A DNA stretch of 63,995 nt, counting the filler, from Lenisia limosa (taxonomy: Eukaryota; Protista; Breviatea), in assembly GCA_001655205.1 (NCBI GenBank). It is 11 parts of 11 records of this genome, joined end to end, with 100 filler letters (N's around TTAATTAATTAA, not from the genome) between each part and the next. Parts side by side here need not be neighbours in the genome. Positions count along the whole stretch, not along the records: positions 22,929 to 37,625 come from LPNZ01001608.1; 10 more parts are not named here. One strand, 5' to 3'. Made by a program: the position numbers and the translations under genes. A model generated the notes under the pieces. The model did not search any database, was not told the origin of the DNA, and saw nothing but the letters and a program-made list of their open reading frames with translations. Each line of letters starts with the position of its first letter. Position 1 is the first letter of the stretch. This document shows, one piece after another, positions 23,110 to 37,625 of the stretch.

Positions 23110-23680
23110 TGAACGACAGTCTCATGCATTGTTTCTCCAACCGTTAGTAGCACTCTGTGTCTGATCCCCCCCCCCCCCNNNNNNNNNNNNNNNNNNNNNN
23201 NNNNNNNNNNNNNNNNNNNNNNNNNNNNNNNNNNNNNNNNNNNNNNNNNNNNNNNNNNNNNNNNNNNNNNNNNNNNNNNNNNNNNNNNNNNNNNNNNNNN
23301 NNNNNNNNNNNNNNNNNNNNGTTGTCATTTTTCTCATGAAGGCGTTGATGGCTGTTTGCAATTCTTGTTTATTCTGTACAGTTTCCCATTACAATTTTCC
23401 TTTTTATCTTTTCACCCCCTCCCAGTCTCAGACCAAGCCATCTCAGAGCGGTCCAACGAGATTCTGCAGAGCCTTTTTGCCCTCAGCACAGCACATGCTG
23501 GTACAACGGTGGCCAAAACGAAAAAGAGGCGCTCAAGGAAGAAGGTTTGTTGTGGCTATTAATAAAAAAGTTCAAGCGGGGAGTCAGGCTAATTGCGTAG
23601 AAGAAAACCACATCAGCTGCCAAAGGGGAAGAAGATGGTGATGCAAAAGAAGAGACGAAAGAGGATGAGGGAGATAACTA
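23110..23680 (+). CDS. 3' exons of a hypothetical protein (basic then acidic C-terminus)
   Basis: Exon-like segments VSDQAISERSNEILQSLFALSTAHAGTTVAKTKKRRSRKK and EEDGDAKEETKEDEGDN* with GT/AG borders. Confidence 0.4.
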
Positions 23681-23749: not shown

Positions 23750-26700
23750 ATGTCTTGCTTTCTCATATCATCATAATATTGAATACAAAGGGTATTCAGG
23801 TCGTAATGAAAGGAAACAAAGTGCATGTACAACACAAGAAACAGCACACAACCACACATTGGTGAAAGAAAACGACTCCACTCGAAGGAAAAACTAATAC
23901 AACGCAAAGCAAGATGTCTATGGAAGAGAAGAGGGAAGAATACCCATGCCTTGACAAATGGCCAAAACAGACTCTGCCGAACCCATCATTGATTCCGACA
24001 ACAAGTGGTCGACTTGGGCTTTCTACATGGTTAGAGAAGATCTGTGCTTGTGTATATGCAAAATGCCCCCCCCCCCTCACATCAGTCAATGGCCCAGCCG
24101 AAGCCATTGCCGCCGCCTCANNNNNNNNNNNNNNNNNNNNNNNNNNNNNNNNNGGTGGCGGATTCTGAAGGTTAACAAATCGGAACAAAAGCCAATGAGA
24201 AGGTACGAATTAGAAATCGGAAGAATTCATGGCATGAGTTCCAGCTAGGTCTTCACTTCGGTTAAAAAAAGACTGAATTTCTCTATAAATCCGAGAAAAA
24301 CTATCGATATTTTACCGGTTCTTTTCGAACCGAAGTGAAGCCCTAGTTCCAACCAACAAACCGAAGTCTGAAGCCCTGCAAGAAGGAACTGGATCGCCTA
24401 AAAGGTCAGTTTCAAAACCAATATTTCAACACTTCTTGATAAATGCAGAATATGACAATTTCAAAGACTTGATGAATTCAGAATACGATATTTTCAAAGA
24501 TGACACAGGTTATCCCACCTTCTCAGGCTTTCTCAGTTTAATATACGACGACGCAGCATCGATACGCGGCTGCTGGAACCTGGTGGTCAGATGAGCCTAA
24601 ACCACCAGACGAGCCTAATTCACGGTATACATGGCCCGGACTGCCCGCCCACCTTGGTGACAGTTCAATGGCAACGCTGAAGTGGGGCAATGCATCGGAA
24701 TAATGGCGGGCGTCTGAGAAGGCCGAGCCCAGCGCGTGGTGGATACGAGGATCCTAATAATCGTTCAAATCAAGCATAAGTCTAATACTATTTAACCGGG
24801 GATAGGATATCAATATTGAACAATGTAATATATCATATGTGCCTTGCCAGATCCTACCGAAGGCTTGAGTTTTGCAGCAATTGAAAAGCAATCCAAAGCA
24901 ATCAGCGGTCTTTTCATCAAAATCAGGATCTTGCCCAGCCTGGACGATTACCCGAAACAGCACAACAAAGAATGAGGTGAAGGTAGGTCCAAAAAACAGA
25001 CCGAATTCTCGATAAATCCTCGATAAATACCGATATTTAAACGGTCTTTTTCGGACCGTAGGAAAGCCCAAGGTGTAGGCCTACAAAAGTTGGACTGCAG
25101 GATCGGGTCTGTTTGGCCGTGTCTGGGCAGCTGATATCAAAGCCTCCGACGCACTGAATATTAGGGGTACTTAAGAAATAACCGAATAAATACTAATGAG
25201 AAGTGAACTACTTACGTTTGGAGGGAAGCTGTCACAGCCTGAAAAGTCAGCAGAAAAAAAGTGAGGAAAAAAGAAGTAGGGGAGGAGTAAAAGTCCCACA
25301 TTTGTCGAGGGATACGACGTCTGTTCAAGCCACTTGAATGTTGCCTTCGCAGTTTCATTGTCATCGCCAAGGGACTGGGATTAGTTAATTACTCAGAAAG
25401 TGATTCACACCATCACATTTATCAAGGATATTTCTCAGAGTATAATACTGTTTCTGTGCACAAAACTGTCAGCACTCCAAGTGAAACATTTTTTTAGCAT
25501 CAGTTTTCAGAAAAGACATAGTATAAGCAGCAAAATACAGCAGCAAACTGAGAAAGCGAGAGCTCTTTCGAAAAGGACATCCGGGTCGTCCGGGGCTAAG
25601 TGTCAGAGAAACATGTATTATGGTAACCTACATAGAGAGTCGGCTTCGAAGAGAGCAAATAAACTGTCAGAGAAATGGCCATGCAGCGACTGAAGAGTGT
25701 TAAGAAAGTCCACTTTAGGAATGGAATTCTCTTTGAATTGTGAGAACTCTCATACATAGATACGTGTCGGAGCATGAAATATTGGATAAGTCAAAAGGTT
25801 TTAGACATTCTGGTTTTTGTGCTGAGATCCTTCTTATAAACTGTCCAAAATATAGAATGCTCAAAAAGTCCAGCTATTCATGGACTCTCACCAGGATGTA
25901 AGCTTTGTATCTGAGGGCTTCCATTGCATGCAACGTTGAAGGCGCGTACTTCACAGCTTCAACAATTGAACTCTCAAATGCTTCCAAGTCCCTACTCAGT
26001 TAATACCAAGAACATTACTAGGGCTTCCCTGCGGTCCGAAAAAGACCATCAAAATATCGATATTTATCGAGGATCGCTAAATTCAACCTACTGTGGGTCC
26101 GTAGGGAAGCCCTAAACATTATGTATTCAGCCTGTGGTAGCTCCCTCACAAAGCTCACCCTCTATGTAGCAAATTTATCCACTTGAAAAATTTCTTATTT
26201 CAATTGCTAAGTCATTTCACTGAAAGTAGCCAAATGCTACCCCGGAAAACGCACACCCTTTTTCAACCGATAAAGCAGCAGAATGTAGGGAGTCCTCATG
26301 GTTGGAGAACAGATCAGCGTGATCGTTGGAGCGGAAGTCGGAAAGGTGCTCTGCCGACTGCAGGTAATTGTCTTCAAACTCGTAATCTGAAAGTTGAGAT
26401 GCAAGCGTAGATAAACCACAGAAATACATGAAGCCTACCAATATCAATGACTGAAATGGGAATTTCACGTTCACCTGCGATGTATACTTCTACAACATAA
26501 AACCTCATTAAAAATTGAAATTTGTTGCGTAGTATTAGGGCATTGTGATTACACCACGGGTTGAAATGTTACATGAAAGACTTTTCAGTTTACTGTCAAA
26601 ATTTCCCAGATGACTGTGACCGGGATGAGTCTTGACCGATTTTCCATGGAAAATCACATAACAAATCGGTCAAGATTTATTCCGGTCACTGTAAATAAAT

Positions 26701-32381: not shown

Positions 32382-35300
32382 TCAGTCAAGTTTAATCTGA
32401 GCAGTAAGGGGCATTCGGAAGTGGCTGTAACAAACCTCTTCCTCGTCATCGTTCAAGGCCAAAGCGGACAAGAGGGACGTTTTATCCTGGCTGCCAACTT
32501 GCAACCGTCTTTGTTCTCGTTCCCACGCATCAAGATCATTATTCGAGGCTGCTGGCTCCGAAATGGCTAAATTCAATGAATAAACATTCGTTTCGAGAAA
32601 TATGAAGGAAAAGTACTCCCTTTCTCACCTTCTTCGTTATCAGTTTTTCCGGTTCTATGTTGAACGTTTGTCCACCTAAAGCGATGAATTGTGCAACAAA
32701 AACTGAAAGTCATCGAGCTCAACCTACGTTCTCCCAGTGACAACTTGTTCGTCATCTTCTGAATTGTCGGTGTCATCAAGATTGCCAAGCTCTTCAGAGA
32801 AGGCATATCTAGTTTGTTAGAAAACGGCAATAGCTATCAACACAACTTCAACTGTTTGTACCCCTTCCCCGTACTGTCTTGAGTTCTTTGATGGGCGCCA
32901 AAGGACCAAAATGGATGATAATATTACCATAAAGAGGACATGCCAATAGGCTGTGTACATCCAAACGCCCTCCCAAGCCTCATCAGGATCCGTTGACACC
33001 AACATCATCCTAAAGAATCAAATAAGACCGTCTAGTAATCCGCGTAGACTGAATCTGCAGGTTACTCACATTTGATAGAGAGCAAAGAAGAAAGAGCCAA
33101 GAACCGCGACAATAAGGACAATAGCGAAGTTACGGTAGATGGCAAGCTTTTTCACCTTGAAAGTTAAAAAAGCAATCTCGGCGTTGGAAGAACTCAGTTA
33201 AATCACTCCAAACCTGTTGGCGGATCTTCAATTGACTGATGGTGCGGTGGAGGGAATGGAAAATGAGCCAAAACAAGAGACCATCAATGCAAGAGAGTGG
33301 AAGAACGAGGAGAAGCATTACAAAGCGGGACACTTCAGTGGTGGTCTGGAATTGTCAAAACGGCCACAATGAAAAAACGTTCCAGAATACTCCATATAGA
33401 AATGAGAAATAAAAACAAGGTTGTCTCTGGCCGAAGCCGCACACCATCACGCTTATAAAAGATATAAGTATAATATACAACTGTACACATAGCTTTCTGC
33501 TTGCCTCCCCAGCATACTCTAATAATTACAATGAAACCATCAAACCAAACCCAAAACAGTCATATCACCGAGCCTACCCGAACATGGTCAGCCAAGTTGA
33601 AGAGAAGAGCAAAAGCGAAGTACAACACACCGAAGATGTAGACCACGGCACCATCACTGCCAAGGGTAGGCCTACGCAATATCAGAATCAAACCACTTGG
33701 TATCGTTGCGGTACAGATCTTACATCCACTCACTTGACAATTCCATATCCCATGGAAACAGAAACAACCAAAATACGAGCTACGGCACTTTTGATGGTCA
33801 AAAACAGAATACCCAATGCGACAGCAGTCAGTGATCTAGAGATCGTGAAAACGAAGGTGTGGGGAGCAAAAACCCTGTAAGCTTGAGATCAGAATTATTG
33901 ATGATATCTTCGGAAGGAAGCCCAATTACCTGTAACCTGTGTTGTTGTAGTAAGCCAAGTCAAGATACTTGATGATCATTTCCATTAAGGCCAGTGCAAC
34001 CACAAGGGTGATGTAGTTCTAAAAGGTCATTTGAGAACCAAAAAATGTCATTCCTCTGAGTTTTTTAGTTACATTCCTTATCATGTTTTTTTGCAACAAC
34101 TCACCTGAAGGCGCATCAGCTCACGGTGATGAAGACACTTCATGACTGCCCACCAGACAAGAAGGCAGAAAAGATACAAGCTAGCCATACCATAGAACTG
34201 AAACAATAAGAAAAAAAATCAAATAATAACAAGTGCTCGAATACTATTTTAAAAGGGGTTTTATCCGCCGTAAGCCGTTATCTCGCTTTAGGAAAGTGGA
34301 TAAGAATAGTAAATGAATAGCATACCGGAAGAAGGTTATACAGTTCTCCTGGGAGATACCCGAAGGGGTTGAGCCAAACAGACTGTCCGTTCACAGTTAC
34401 GACACCATCAGCTACACAGTGAGATATTTCTCCATGTAAGATAGTCAATAAGTACAATTCTCTGGATTTCATCTCGCCAAAGTTCGCACCCCCCCCCCCT
34501 CAAACAGTAAGTGACATCAAGGCAGTTGATGGCATACATGTAATAACGTCCCGTCTCTGTGATACTCATTTTCTAAGAACGTGATCCATTGACCATTTAT
34601 TATTGCAACAATGGAAAGATAATGAAAAGAGCAGGTAAAGACTTCATCAATAGATAACCTAATTGCCCCCCTTCTATGTTATTGTAGACGTGGACTTTTT
34701 TTATGCATTTTTTTGCCACAAAATAAAGTGGTTTTGCCCAACCAGGCTAATTGGAAGAGAACGGTCCTTTGGGGGCTGTTCCTTGTTGAAGAAGGAGGAG
34801 TCCATACTGTACAATGACGTATCAGCCTAATGTGTGAGACAACATTCAGTCCATCAACAGGTATAGTATTAATACGGTCAATAAATAAATGCAATACCCC
34901 CCCCCCTCCCCTTAAACAAAATTCAAAACAATAAGTTATGAGTTCAATTGAATGGGAATGTTATCCAGAAAAAGATACAAGGTCAGAAATTGCATCATAC
35001 TGAGACAATTGCTTCGCCAAGTCTTGAGTTTCCACACACGCCTTGGGCCATCAACTGGTTTGTGCAACATACTTGCTGCTGACAAGGTGTTAGCAAACAG
35101 CACAACATTGGCAACAAAAAGCGGGGGGAAACCTCTCAGTCCTGCATACTTTACCATCACTAAGAACACCAATCTTTGGACGGGCTTTGTGATGGGCAAT
35201 CACGACCGATACGGCTCCATTTGCACTTGCCTCAGAGGCAGTGACGTTTGCTGTAAAGTAAGCAGGGGGTGAACTCTAGATCGTATAAGCCCTATAGTCA

Positions 35301-35566: not shown

Positions 35567-35910
35567 TGCACACAATCTCAGACCCATCCTAAGCGTATTT
35601 TATAATTTGGTGAAACACCAATCTCACTTAAAATCTGTCTCCACCTTACTATAACAGAACTACAAACCCAAAGGTAGAAAAATACAGTTTTAAATAGGAT
35701 TTTGAAGTTTTTTAAAAAAATTGGGGTTTGCTGTATATTTTACAAGGGGTGTTTTATAACTTTCCTTTAAAATTGTTTTTATGCCTTTTTTCGGCCTGTT
35801 GCATTGAATTACTTCAATAGTGTTACGTGTCACAGGTAGAAGGGACAACAGTAGACAAAAACCCCCATTATTCTTTTTTAATTTTGTGATCATTCTAGAC
35901 TTCTCCAAGA

Positions 35911-37625
35911 ATGTTTTCTGCTGTTCGCTCAGTTTCACGCCTAGCGGCGTCAGCCACACAAAATGTGGCCAAAAGCATGGCTCCACCTATTTCTCGTGGA
36001 ATTAAGCAAGTTTCGATGTGGTCCATGGAAGAGGAAGGTAAATGGGAGTAAAATAGGGCGAAGAGGAGGATTTCAGATCTTCCTCCCAGCCGTTTTCGTT
36101 TGATTTCTCATACAGTTTGATTATGTCCCTGCCTTCTCCTTCATGAATGTGTCTAATGAAGTGAATACGCCCATGTAACATGCTTTTCGTATTTTGATCC
36201 TTTTCAGAACACACTTTCAAGGACCCTTCTGAGATCATTCGCATGGATGAGATCAAGTATTGGCTCAAGGAGACCAAAACTGCTGCCAAAGTAAGGAATT
36301 TGTTGATTTCTATTCAGTCCTCTTGCTCTATTGCTTACTTTTTCAGTCTTCCACTCGTATTAAGGAGATTCTTGAGTCTGCTGTCCAGCATGCTTGCCTT
36401 GAACATGCTCAAACCCCTATGGATGCCTCTGAGTGAGCTCTCCTTTTGTTTATTCTTCAATGTTGTCAACTATAGAGCCCTTCTTTCGTTCTTTTTACTT
36501 TATTTGTTGCTGTTGTTACCTTTAATAACCTCTTGCACAACATATCTGTTGAGACAAACATACCTCACATTCTAGGTATGTGAATGGCCTGACTTATGAG
36601 GAAACTGCGACTCTCCTCAACGCTGATGTGAATGACCTCGAGCTTATGGATCAGCTTTACGCTACCGGTATGGTGCTGTTCCTTTTTTGCTTTGCTATCT
36701 CATCGTCAACTTGTCCGTTCTCATCTTTCAGCCTTTAAGATCAAGGAGCGCATCTATGGAAACCGCATTGTTCTCTTTGCTCCCCTCTACATTGCCAACC
36801 ACTGTGTCAACGGCTGTACCTACTGCGGCTTCAAGTAGGTGCACTTCTCTGAGGACTCTTAATGCATTTCTGGCTACTTTTCTTTGGCATTTTTAACGAA
36901 TATAGNNNNNNNNNNNNNNNNNNNNNNNNNNNNNNNNNNNNNNNNNNNNNNNNNNNNNNNNNNNNNNNNNNNNNNNNNNNNNNNNNNNNNNNNNNNNNNN
37001 NNNNNNNNNNNNNNNNNNNNNNNNNNNNNNNNNNNNNNNNNNNNNNNNNNNNNNNNNNNNNNNNNNNNNNNNNNNNNNNNNNNNNNNNNNNNNNNNNNNN
37101 NNNNNNNNNNNNNNNNNNNNNNNNNNNNNNNNNNNNNNCCTTGATGCCCTCAAGTCTGCTACTCCATTTTCCTGGATTATGAATAGTACTTCACTTCGGT
37201 TAATTTCCGAGGATTTATCGAGAAATTCAGTCTTTTTTTCTAACCAAGTGAAGCCCTAATTATGAGTGTTCCTTCCACCCTGGCCTGACCCTCTAGGCTA
37301 ACGTCAGAAATTGAGACTGAGCCTTTTGGCAAAATCCGTCGTGTCAACGTTGAGATTCCTCGTAGGTCCCTGTTTCTCTTTTTTGTAGTATTATTTGTTT
37401 CACTTCTCTCGGCTCACATTTCAGCCCTTTCTGTTTCGGATTTCCGTCGCCTCAAAGACATGAACCATGTCGGCACCTACACCGTGTTCCAGGAAACCTA
37501 CGACCCCGAGCTCTACTCAAAGGTTTGAAAGCAGCTGCTTCGAAAAACCTGTCATTTGGAGCCCTGTTTACCATTGCAGTATCATCCTTCCGGCCCCAAG
37601 GCAGACTACGGATGGCGCCTCCAAG
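35911..37625 (+). CDS. HYDG: [FeFe]-hydrogenase maturase HydG (radical SAM) with N-terminal mitochondrial-type presequence; 3'-truncated
   Basis: YVNGLTYEETATLLNADVNDLELMDQLYATAFKIKERIYGNRIVLFAPLYIANHCVNGCTYCGF (CxxxCxxC), GKIRRVNVEIPPLSVSDFRRLK, VGTYTVFQETY, HPSGPKADY. At least 8 visible spliceosomal introns. Exon 1 reads MFSAVRSVSRLAASATQNVAKSMAPPISRGIKQVSMW. Confidence 0.93.
37184..37258. mobile_element. hAT-type MITE family A, internally deleted copy inside a HydG intron
   Basis: TAG..CTTCACTTCGGT ... AACCAAGTGAAGCCCTA with 8-bp flanks ATTATGAA / ATTATGAG. Confidence 0.8.

Follow-up and report, generated by a model that had tools for sequence, protein, structure and literature searches.

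Breviates have been found exclusively in hypoxic or anoxic habitats, they lack plastids, and ATP synthesis in their mitochondrion-related organelles (MROs) is thought to be coupled to the production of H2 (PMC12453579). H2-producing MROs are a feature of this class, Breviatea, to which Pygsuia biforma belongs as well as Lenisia limosa. All of eight breviates, L. limosa included, encode hydrogenase maturases that are predicted to be targeted to the MRO, and most of the eight encode an MRO-targeted HydA; the breviate BLO apparently has a cytosolic HydA only (bioRxiv 10.64898/2026.01.29.702055). For L. limosa itself, an [FeFe] group A1 hydrogenase is listed in HydDB, with H2 evolution given as experimentally confirmed (PMC5037454). 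Outside the breviates, the hydrogenase and HydE of Naegleria gruberi are cytosolic, against an in silico prediction of mitochondrial H2 production (PMC4007538).

Here we describe the genomic locus of one of these maturases in L. limosa (assembly GCA_001655205.1). The window, that is, the whole stretch of DNA that was analyzed, consists of 63,995 nucleotides of joined assembly parts, filler included, and the locus occupies 35911-37625 on the plus strand, at the end of the piece taken from LPNZ01001608.1. The locus is confirmed as the 5' part of hydG, a spliced eukaryotic gene in the nuclear genome of L. limosa. We consider it very probable that this is the hydG of an anaerobic breviate, whose product is imported by means of a presequence into the MRO and there matures HydA together with HydE and HydF for H2 production.

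Results

Exon-intron structure and transcription of hydG

The gene model was built by three-frame translation of 35850-37625 followed by anchoring on splice sites. For comparison, two public runs from one 2016 study were used, a DNA-like run and a polyA RNA run labelled as metatranscriptomic; sampled words of the stretch were all present in the DNA-like run, and 30% of them in the polyA RNA run. When compared over 35700-37625, a single 1696-nt contig of the polyA RNA run skipped exactly the predicted introns, with exon joints at 36037/36208, 36290/36347, 36432/36576, 36667/36732, 37361/37425 and 37522/37580. The hydG gene is transcribed, polyadenylated and spliced. Its introns in the window are GT..AG throughout and 56-170 nt long, and at least nine of them lie within the first 876 nt of the mRNA.

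The RNA contig begins 14 nt 5' of the ATG at 35911 and continues into a spliced 5'UTR exon. The nine loose letters that open the contig, ACGTGTCAC, correspond to 35825-35833 and are followed in the genome by AG|GTAGAA, so that the visible end of the 5'UTR exon is placed at 35825-35835 and a 63-nt GT..AG intron, which is read solely from these nine letters, at 35836-35898. After splicing of the leader, an in-frame TAG stands 10 codons upstream of the ATG at 35911, with no ATG between them. Given this upstream stop codon, the lack of another ATG and the RNA coverage, the start codon and the N-terminal extension that follows it are real and expressed.

Exon 1 (35899-36037), which is supported by translation and by the RNA contig piece 35897-36035 (cut +2), contains the coding sequence of a predicted presequence of 36 amino acids (residues 1-36, 35911-36018), delimited by charge, alignment variability and pLDDT, and directly 3' of it a conserved WSxExE segment (36019-36036). 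Exons 2 (36208-36290), 3 (36347-36432) and 4 (36576-36667) are supported by both translation and the RNA contig. They are separated by intron 1 (36038-36207, 170 nt), the GT..AG joint of which is seen in RNA, and by introns 2 (36291-36346, 56 nt), 3 (36433-36575, 143 nt) and 4 (36668-36731, 64 nt), all three likewise defined by the RNA contig. Exon 5 (36732-36834), which is covered by the RNA contig and gave a HydG match with an E-value of 6e-14, harbors YGNRIVLFAPLY (36755-36790) and the radical-SAM motif CX3CX2C in the form CVNGCTYC (36803-36826).

Intron 5 starts at 36835 and is visible up to 36905, where it enters an assembly gap (36906-37138); the whole segment 36835-37138 was interpreted using the RNA contig and protein residues 164-215. 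The gap conceals ~138 nt of an exon (residues 164-210) as well as the remainder of intron 5, and the last 15 nt of this exon, coding for ..LDALK (residues 211-215) according to translation and the protein match, appear at 37139-37153. In the RNA contig, 153 letters fall between 36834 and 37297, the last 15 of them being those visible at 37139-37153, and the arithmetic across the gap (2 + 153 + 1 = 156 nt, or 52 codons) keeps the reading frame. Since these letters bridge the interval in frame, a single continuous gene spans the gap, and the transcript can therefore be used to complete the HydG model of this contig. DNA contigs of run X1 enter the gap, by 136 nt on its left side and 123 nt on its right, so that the gap is probably at least ~259 nt long unless these contigs overlap. 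It looks closable with public data.

Downstream of the gap, an intron of 143 nt (37154-37296), defined by the RNA joint at 37297, precedes the exon with IRRVNVEIP (exon 37297-37361, motif 37334-37360), which is supported by translation and the RNA contig. An intron of 63 nt (37362-37424), the exon with QETY (exon 37425-37522, motif 37490-37501; HydG match with an E-value of 3e-4) and an intron of 57 nt (37523-37579) follow, all three covered or defined by the RNA contig. The last exon (37580-37625) runs into the end of the piece, where the gene is truncated at residue 284 of 533 and at position 876 of the 1696-nt RNA contig. A further 820 nt of the hydG mRNA extend past this point, and the C-terminal half of HydG is known from the transcript protein alone. 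The initial annotation had described HydG-type motifs split by spliceosomal introns, and this description holds, as the motifs lie on separate exons with GT..AG borders that are joined in RNA. Rfam and tRNA scans of the piece gave no matches.

The intron at 37154-37296 contains a highly repeated element of ~40 nt (37204-37245). In contigs of the DNA run, its summed word depth was ~146,628, compared with ~37 in the flanking sequence, and over 1000 contigs with diverse loose ends align there. The element is also present in RNA contigs, and the 14.7-kb piece holds no second copy of it. These ~40 nt probably form the core of a dispersed repeat or a MITE-like element.

The predicted N-terminal presequence and the WSxExE segment

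Exon 5 was used as a phmmer query, through which a full-length homologue was reached, and a word-index search with this homologue led to a 533-aa Lenisia protein, EukProt EP01086_Lenisia_limosa_P001575. The phmmer matches of the exon were mostly fragments, and their value lay in the path to the full-length homologue only. All residues encoded by the visible exons (237 residues, 1-163 and 211-284) are 100% identical to this protein, and the whole-protein analyses were run on it.

The first ~36 residues have the appearance of a typical mitochondrial-type presequence, being basic, free of acidic residues and predicted to be disordered. Residues 1-39 comprise three Arg, two Lys, eight Ser and six Ala with no Asp or Glu, resulting in a net charge of +5, and the helical hydrophobic moment reaches 0.6-0.7 at residues 1-12 and 22-33, as in amphipathic segments. 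In the alignment, the four chlamydial HydG sequences have nothing ahead of query residue 50, and 1-16 residues precede this position in the other short bacterial-type sequences, while eukaryotic HydGs begin with basic, variable extensions, each of them running up to a conserved WSxExE...H..K.P, which starts at residue 37 in Lenisia. In the AlphaFold model, pLDDT is below 50 at residues 1-32 and ~96 from residue 41 onward. Charge and composition, alignment and pLDDT together delimit a cleavable-looking presequence of 30-36 amino acids.

An N-terminal extension of ~35 amino acids without acidic residues had been proposed in the initial annotation, and 36 variable residues ahead of WSxExE, none of them Asp or Glu, agree with it. 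The extension is also transcribed, as the RNA contig covers it in frame with the start codon at 35911. Plastid targeting was rejected because breviates lack plastids and the N-terminus is not signal-peptide-like.

The WSxExE...H..K.P segment directly follows the presequence (residues 37-49; 36019-36037 and exon 2) and was found in 114 of the 166 HydG homologues examined. The remaining 52 are mostly bacterial-type or N-terminally truncated sequences of ~410-490 amino acids, together with a few longer ones (~500-520 amino acids). The motif is kept in essentially all full-length eukaryotic HydG proteins, whether of MRO type or plastid type, and is absent from their bacterial and chlamydial sisters. 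AlphaFold packs the segment onto the enzyme with high confidence (pLDDT ~96). Instead of merely being the start of the mature protein, it might be a functional element added in eukaryotes only, for instance one for processing or docking that was gained a single time when eukaryotic HydG arose; we regard this idea as rather unlikely.

Compartment of HydG

The full gene encodes a 533-aa radical-SAM tyrosine lyase, HydG. We infer its enzymatic role from family homology, according to which it would make the Fe(CO)2(CN) synthon for the H-cluster of [FeFe]-hydrogenase. The ~36-aa presequence most likely directs HydG into the MRO, an import that is predicted from sequence, and inside this organelle it would act with HydE and HydF in the maturation of HydA, which would serve fermentative H2 production.

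A presequence-like extension alone is no proof of the compartment, given that the hydrogenase and HydE of Naegleria are cytosolic. HydG and the maturation machinery might be cytosolic in Lenisia as well, the N-terminal extension not being a working import signal. In addition to Naegleria, where localization went against the in silico predictions (PMC4007538), the seemingly cytosolic-only HydA of the breviate BLO speaks for such an arrangement (bioRxiv 10.64898/2026.01.29.702055). However, in composition the extension of Lenisia HydG looks like a presequence in every respect, it is predicted to be disordered, and the conserved mature N-terminus lies downstream of it; MRO targeting is also predicted for the maturases of every breviate in the study, L. 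limosa among them (bioRxiv 10.64898/2026.01.29.702055). We therefore consider a cytosolic HydG improbable and favor import into the MRO.

The proposal of the initial annotation that [FeFe]-hydrogenase is assembled in a mitochondrion-type organelle is reasonable and matches the view already accepted for L. limosa; the idea itself was known before, and the import step is a prediction. Its suggestion that the finding would be notable if the lineage were aerobic falls away, as Lenisia is an anaerobic breviate with published H2 production.

Phylogenetic position and source of the gene

Trees were constructed with FastTree (166 sequences) and with IQ-TREE under LG+C20 (71 sequences). In both, Lenisia HydG is sister to the HydG of Pygsuia biforma (GCRY01000488), with a support of 99 in the FastTree tree and an SH-aLRT value of 98 under LG+C20. 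Both fall within the clade of eukaryotic HydG, which adjoins Anoxychlamydiales, and the same placement of the eukaryotic clade has been published (PMC7449678).

The sequence could in principle derive from a bacterial contaminant of the epibiont or prey community or from an alga with a plastid-targeted HydG, considering that the culture is a mixed community, that the RNA library is labelled as metatranscriptomic and that diatoms and algae are among the best pairwise identities (55-58%). However, nine GT..AG spliceosomal introns are removed in polyA RNA, which led us to reject a bacterial contaminant, and the exon translations are identical to the EukProt protein of Lenisia. The sister relationship to the breviate Pygsuia and an N-terminus without a signal-peptide-like hydrophobic stretch also contradict a foreign origin, which we regard as extremely unlikely. 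The gene belongs to L. limosa.

HydG versus ThiH

In the 533-aa protein, Pfam detects Radical_SAM and BATS domains. The CX3CX2C motif is located at residues 154-161, and its three Cys residues are invariant in the HydG alignment. A C-terminal CX2CX22C motif at residues 447-473 is aligned to that of Thermoanaerobacter italicus HydG (PDB 4WCX); it lies outside the window and was seen in the transcript protein only. CX2CX22C is the auxiliary-cluster motif that separates HydG from ThiH. The top match among solved structures was 4WCX (E 1e-138, residues 72-533), and the AlphaFold model, built with a 68-sequence alignment, has a mean pLDDT of 90.4.

With the curated models, the protein scored 503.4 bits for HydG (TIGR03955, cut-off 312.15), residues 50-533 corresponding to profile positions 9-470 of 470, and 287.8 bits for ThiH (TIGR02351), below the cut-off of 380. 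An assignment as ThiH, the 2-iminoacetate synthase of thiamine synthesis, can hardly be credited and was rejected based on these cut-offs: single exons do match both NCBIfam models at similar E-values, with HydG favored, and some database sources name the homologues '2-iminoacetate synthase', but the full-length protein passes as HydG and fails as ThiH, it possesses the HydG-specific C-terminal domain with CX2CX22C, and it is placed inside the eukaryotic HydG clade. The gene is hydG, as the initial annotation had stated, and the C-terminal CxxC...C motif, whose absence would have counted against that annotation by its own terms, is present in the full-length transcript protein.

Maturase partners and neighborhood of hydG

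When chlamydial HydF was used as a query, none of the best 120 matches listed was recognizably from Lenisia; these are mostly unnamed or bacterial-type entries with a few named eukaryotes and are uninformative on Lenisia. According to the literature, HydA, HydE and HydF are present in L. limosa (bioRxiv 10.64898/2026.01.29.702055; PMC5037454). A Pfam scan of ten ORFs in the 13 kb upstream of hydG detected no radical-SAM or HydF domains, a scan that small exons may escape. A head-to-head HydEF neighbor as in Chlamydomonas was also considered and rejected, as the ten upstream ORFs gave only GOST_TM (PF06814) and a weak TPR match.

The PF06814 matches are on the minus strand at 32820-33017 (E 7e-7, profile positions 210-245 of 246) and 33133-33354 (E 8e-5), pointing to exons of a GOST / Lung-7TM-receptor gene at ~32820-33354, possibly extending to ~34500. 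The ORF at 34281-34499 appears by eye to belong to the same GOST family, with no Pfam match. Another ORF on the minus strand, at 24541-24753, showed a weak TPR_2 match (E 0.0015) and may be part of a gene for a TPR protein, as one of its exons. The piece has additional small N-gaps at 23179-23320 and 24121-24153.

Discussion

The exon-intron structure, including the 5'UTR intron and the start codon, provides genome-level confirmation of a maturase already catalogued from the Lenisia transcriptome. What is new here is the exon-intron structure only; the rest is already known. Lenisia hydG fits the published picture of H2-producing MROs in breviates.

In the chlamydial sister lineage, on the Anoxychlamydiales contig SDBT01000229.1 (8001-11672), hydG, hydE and hydF form a tight overlapping operon. 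In Lenisia, a maturase domain was detected in none of the ten ORFs scanned upstream of hydG. ThiH (PDB 7PD1, TIGR02351) is likewise a radical-SAM tyrosine lyase and has the core and BATS domain in common with Lenisia HydG, but it lacks the C-terminal cluster domain. The HydG of T. italicus (4WCX, TIGR03955) shares the CX3CX2C motif, the BATS domain and the CX2CX22C motif with full-length homology, and the HANHL histidine region is conserved between the two proteins. In contrast to T. italicus HydG, Lenisia HydG has ~47 extra N-terminal residues, which comprise the predicted 36-aa presequence and the eukaryote-specific WSxExE segment, and it is encoded by an intron-interrupted nuclear gene.

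Among eukaryotes, the HydG proteins of Stygiella, Mastigamoeba, Pelomyxa, Naegleria and Acanthamoeba, which are predicted to be mitochondrial or MRO proteins, fall in the same monophyletic clade, sister to Anoxychlamydiales. Their N-terminal extensions resemble that of Lenisia HydG in length and charge and likewise end at WSxExE; the proteins are just 49-56% identical to Lenisia HydG. The nearest relative in the trees is the HydG of Pygsuia biforma (EukProt EP00033_P000408, TSA GCRY01000488), which is 64% identical over 411 columns; this entry is N-terminally truncated (414 aa), so that the comparison excludes the presequence. The ISC system of Lenisia is fuller than that of Pygsuia, and the two belong to different branches of the breviates (bioRxiv 10.64898/2026.01.29.702055).
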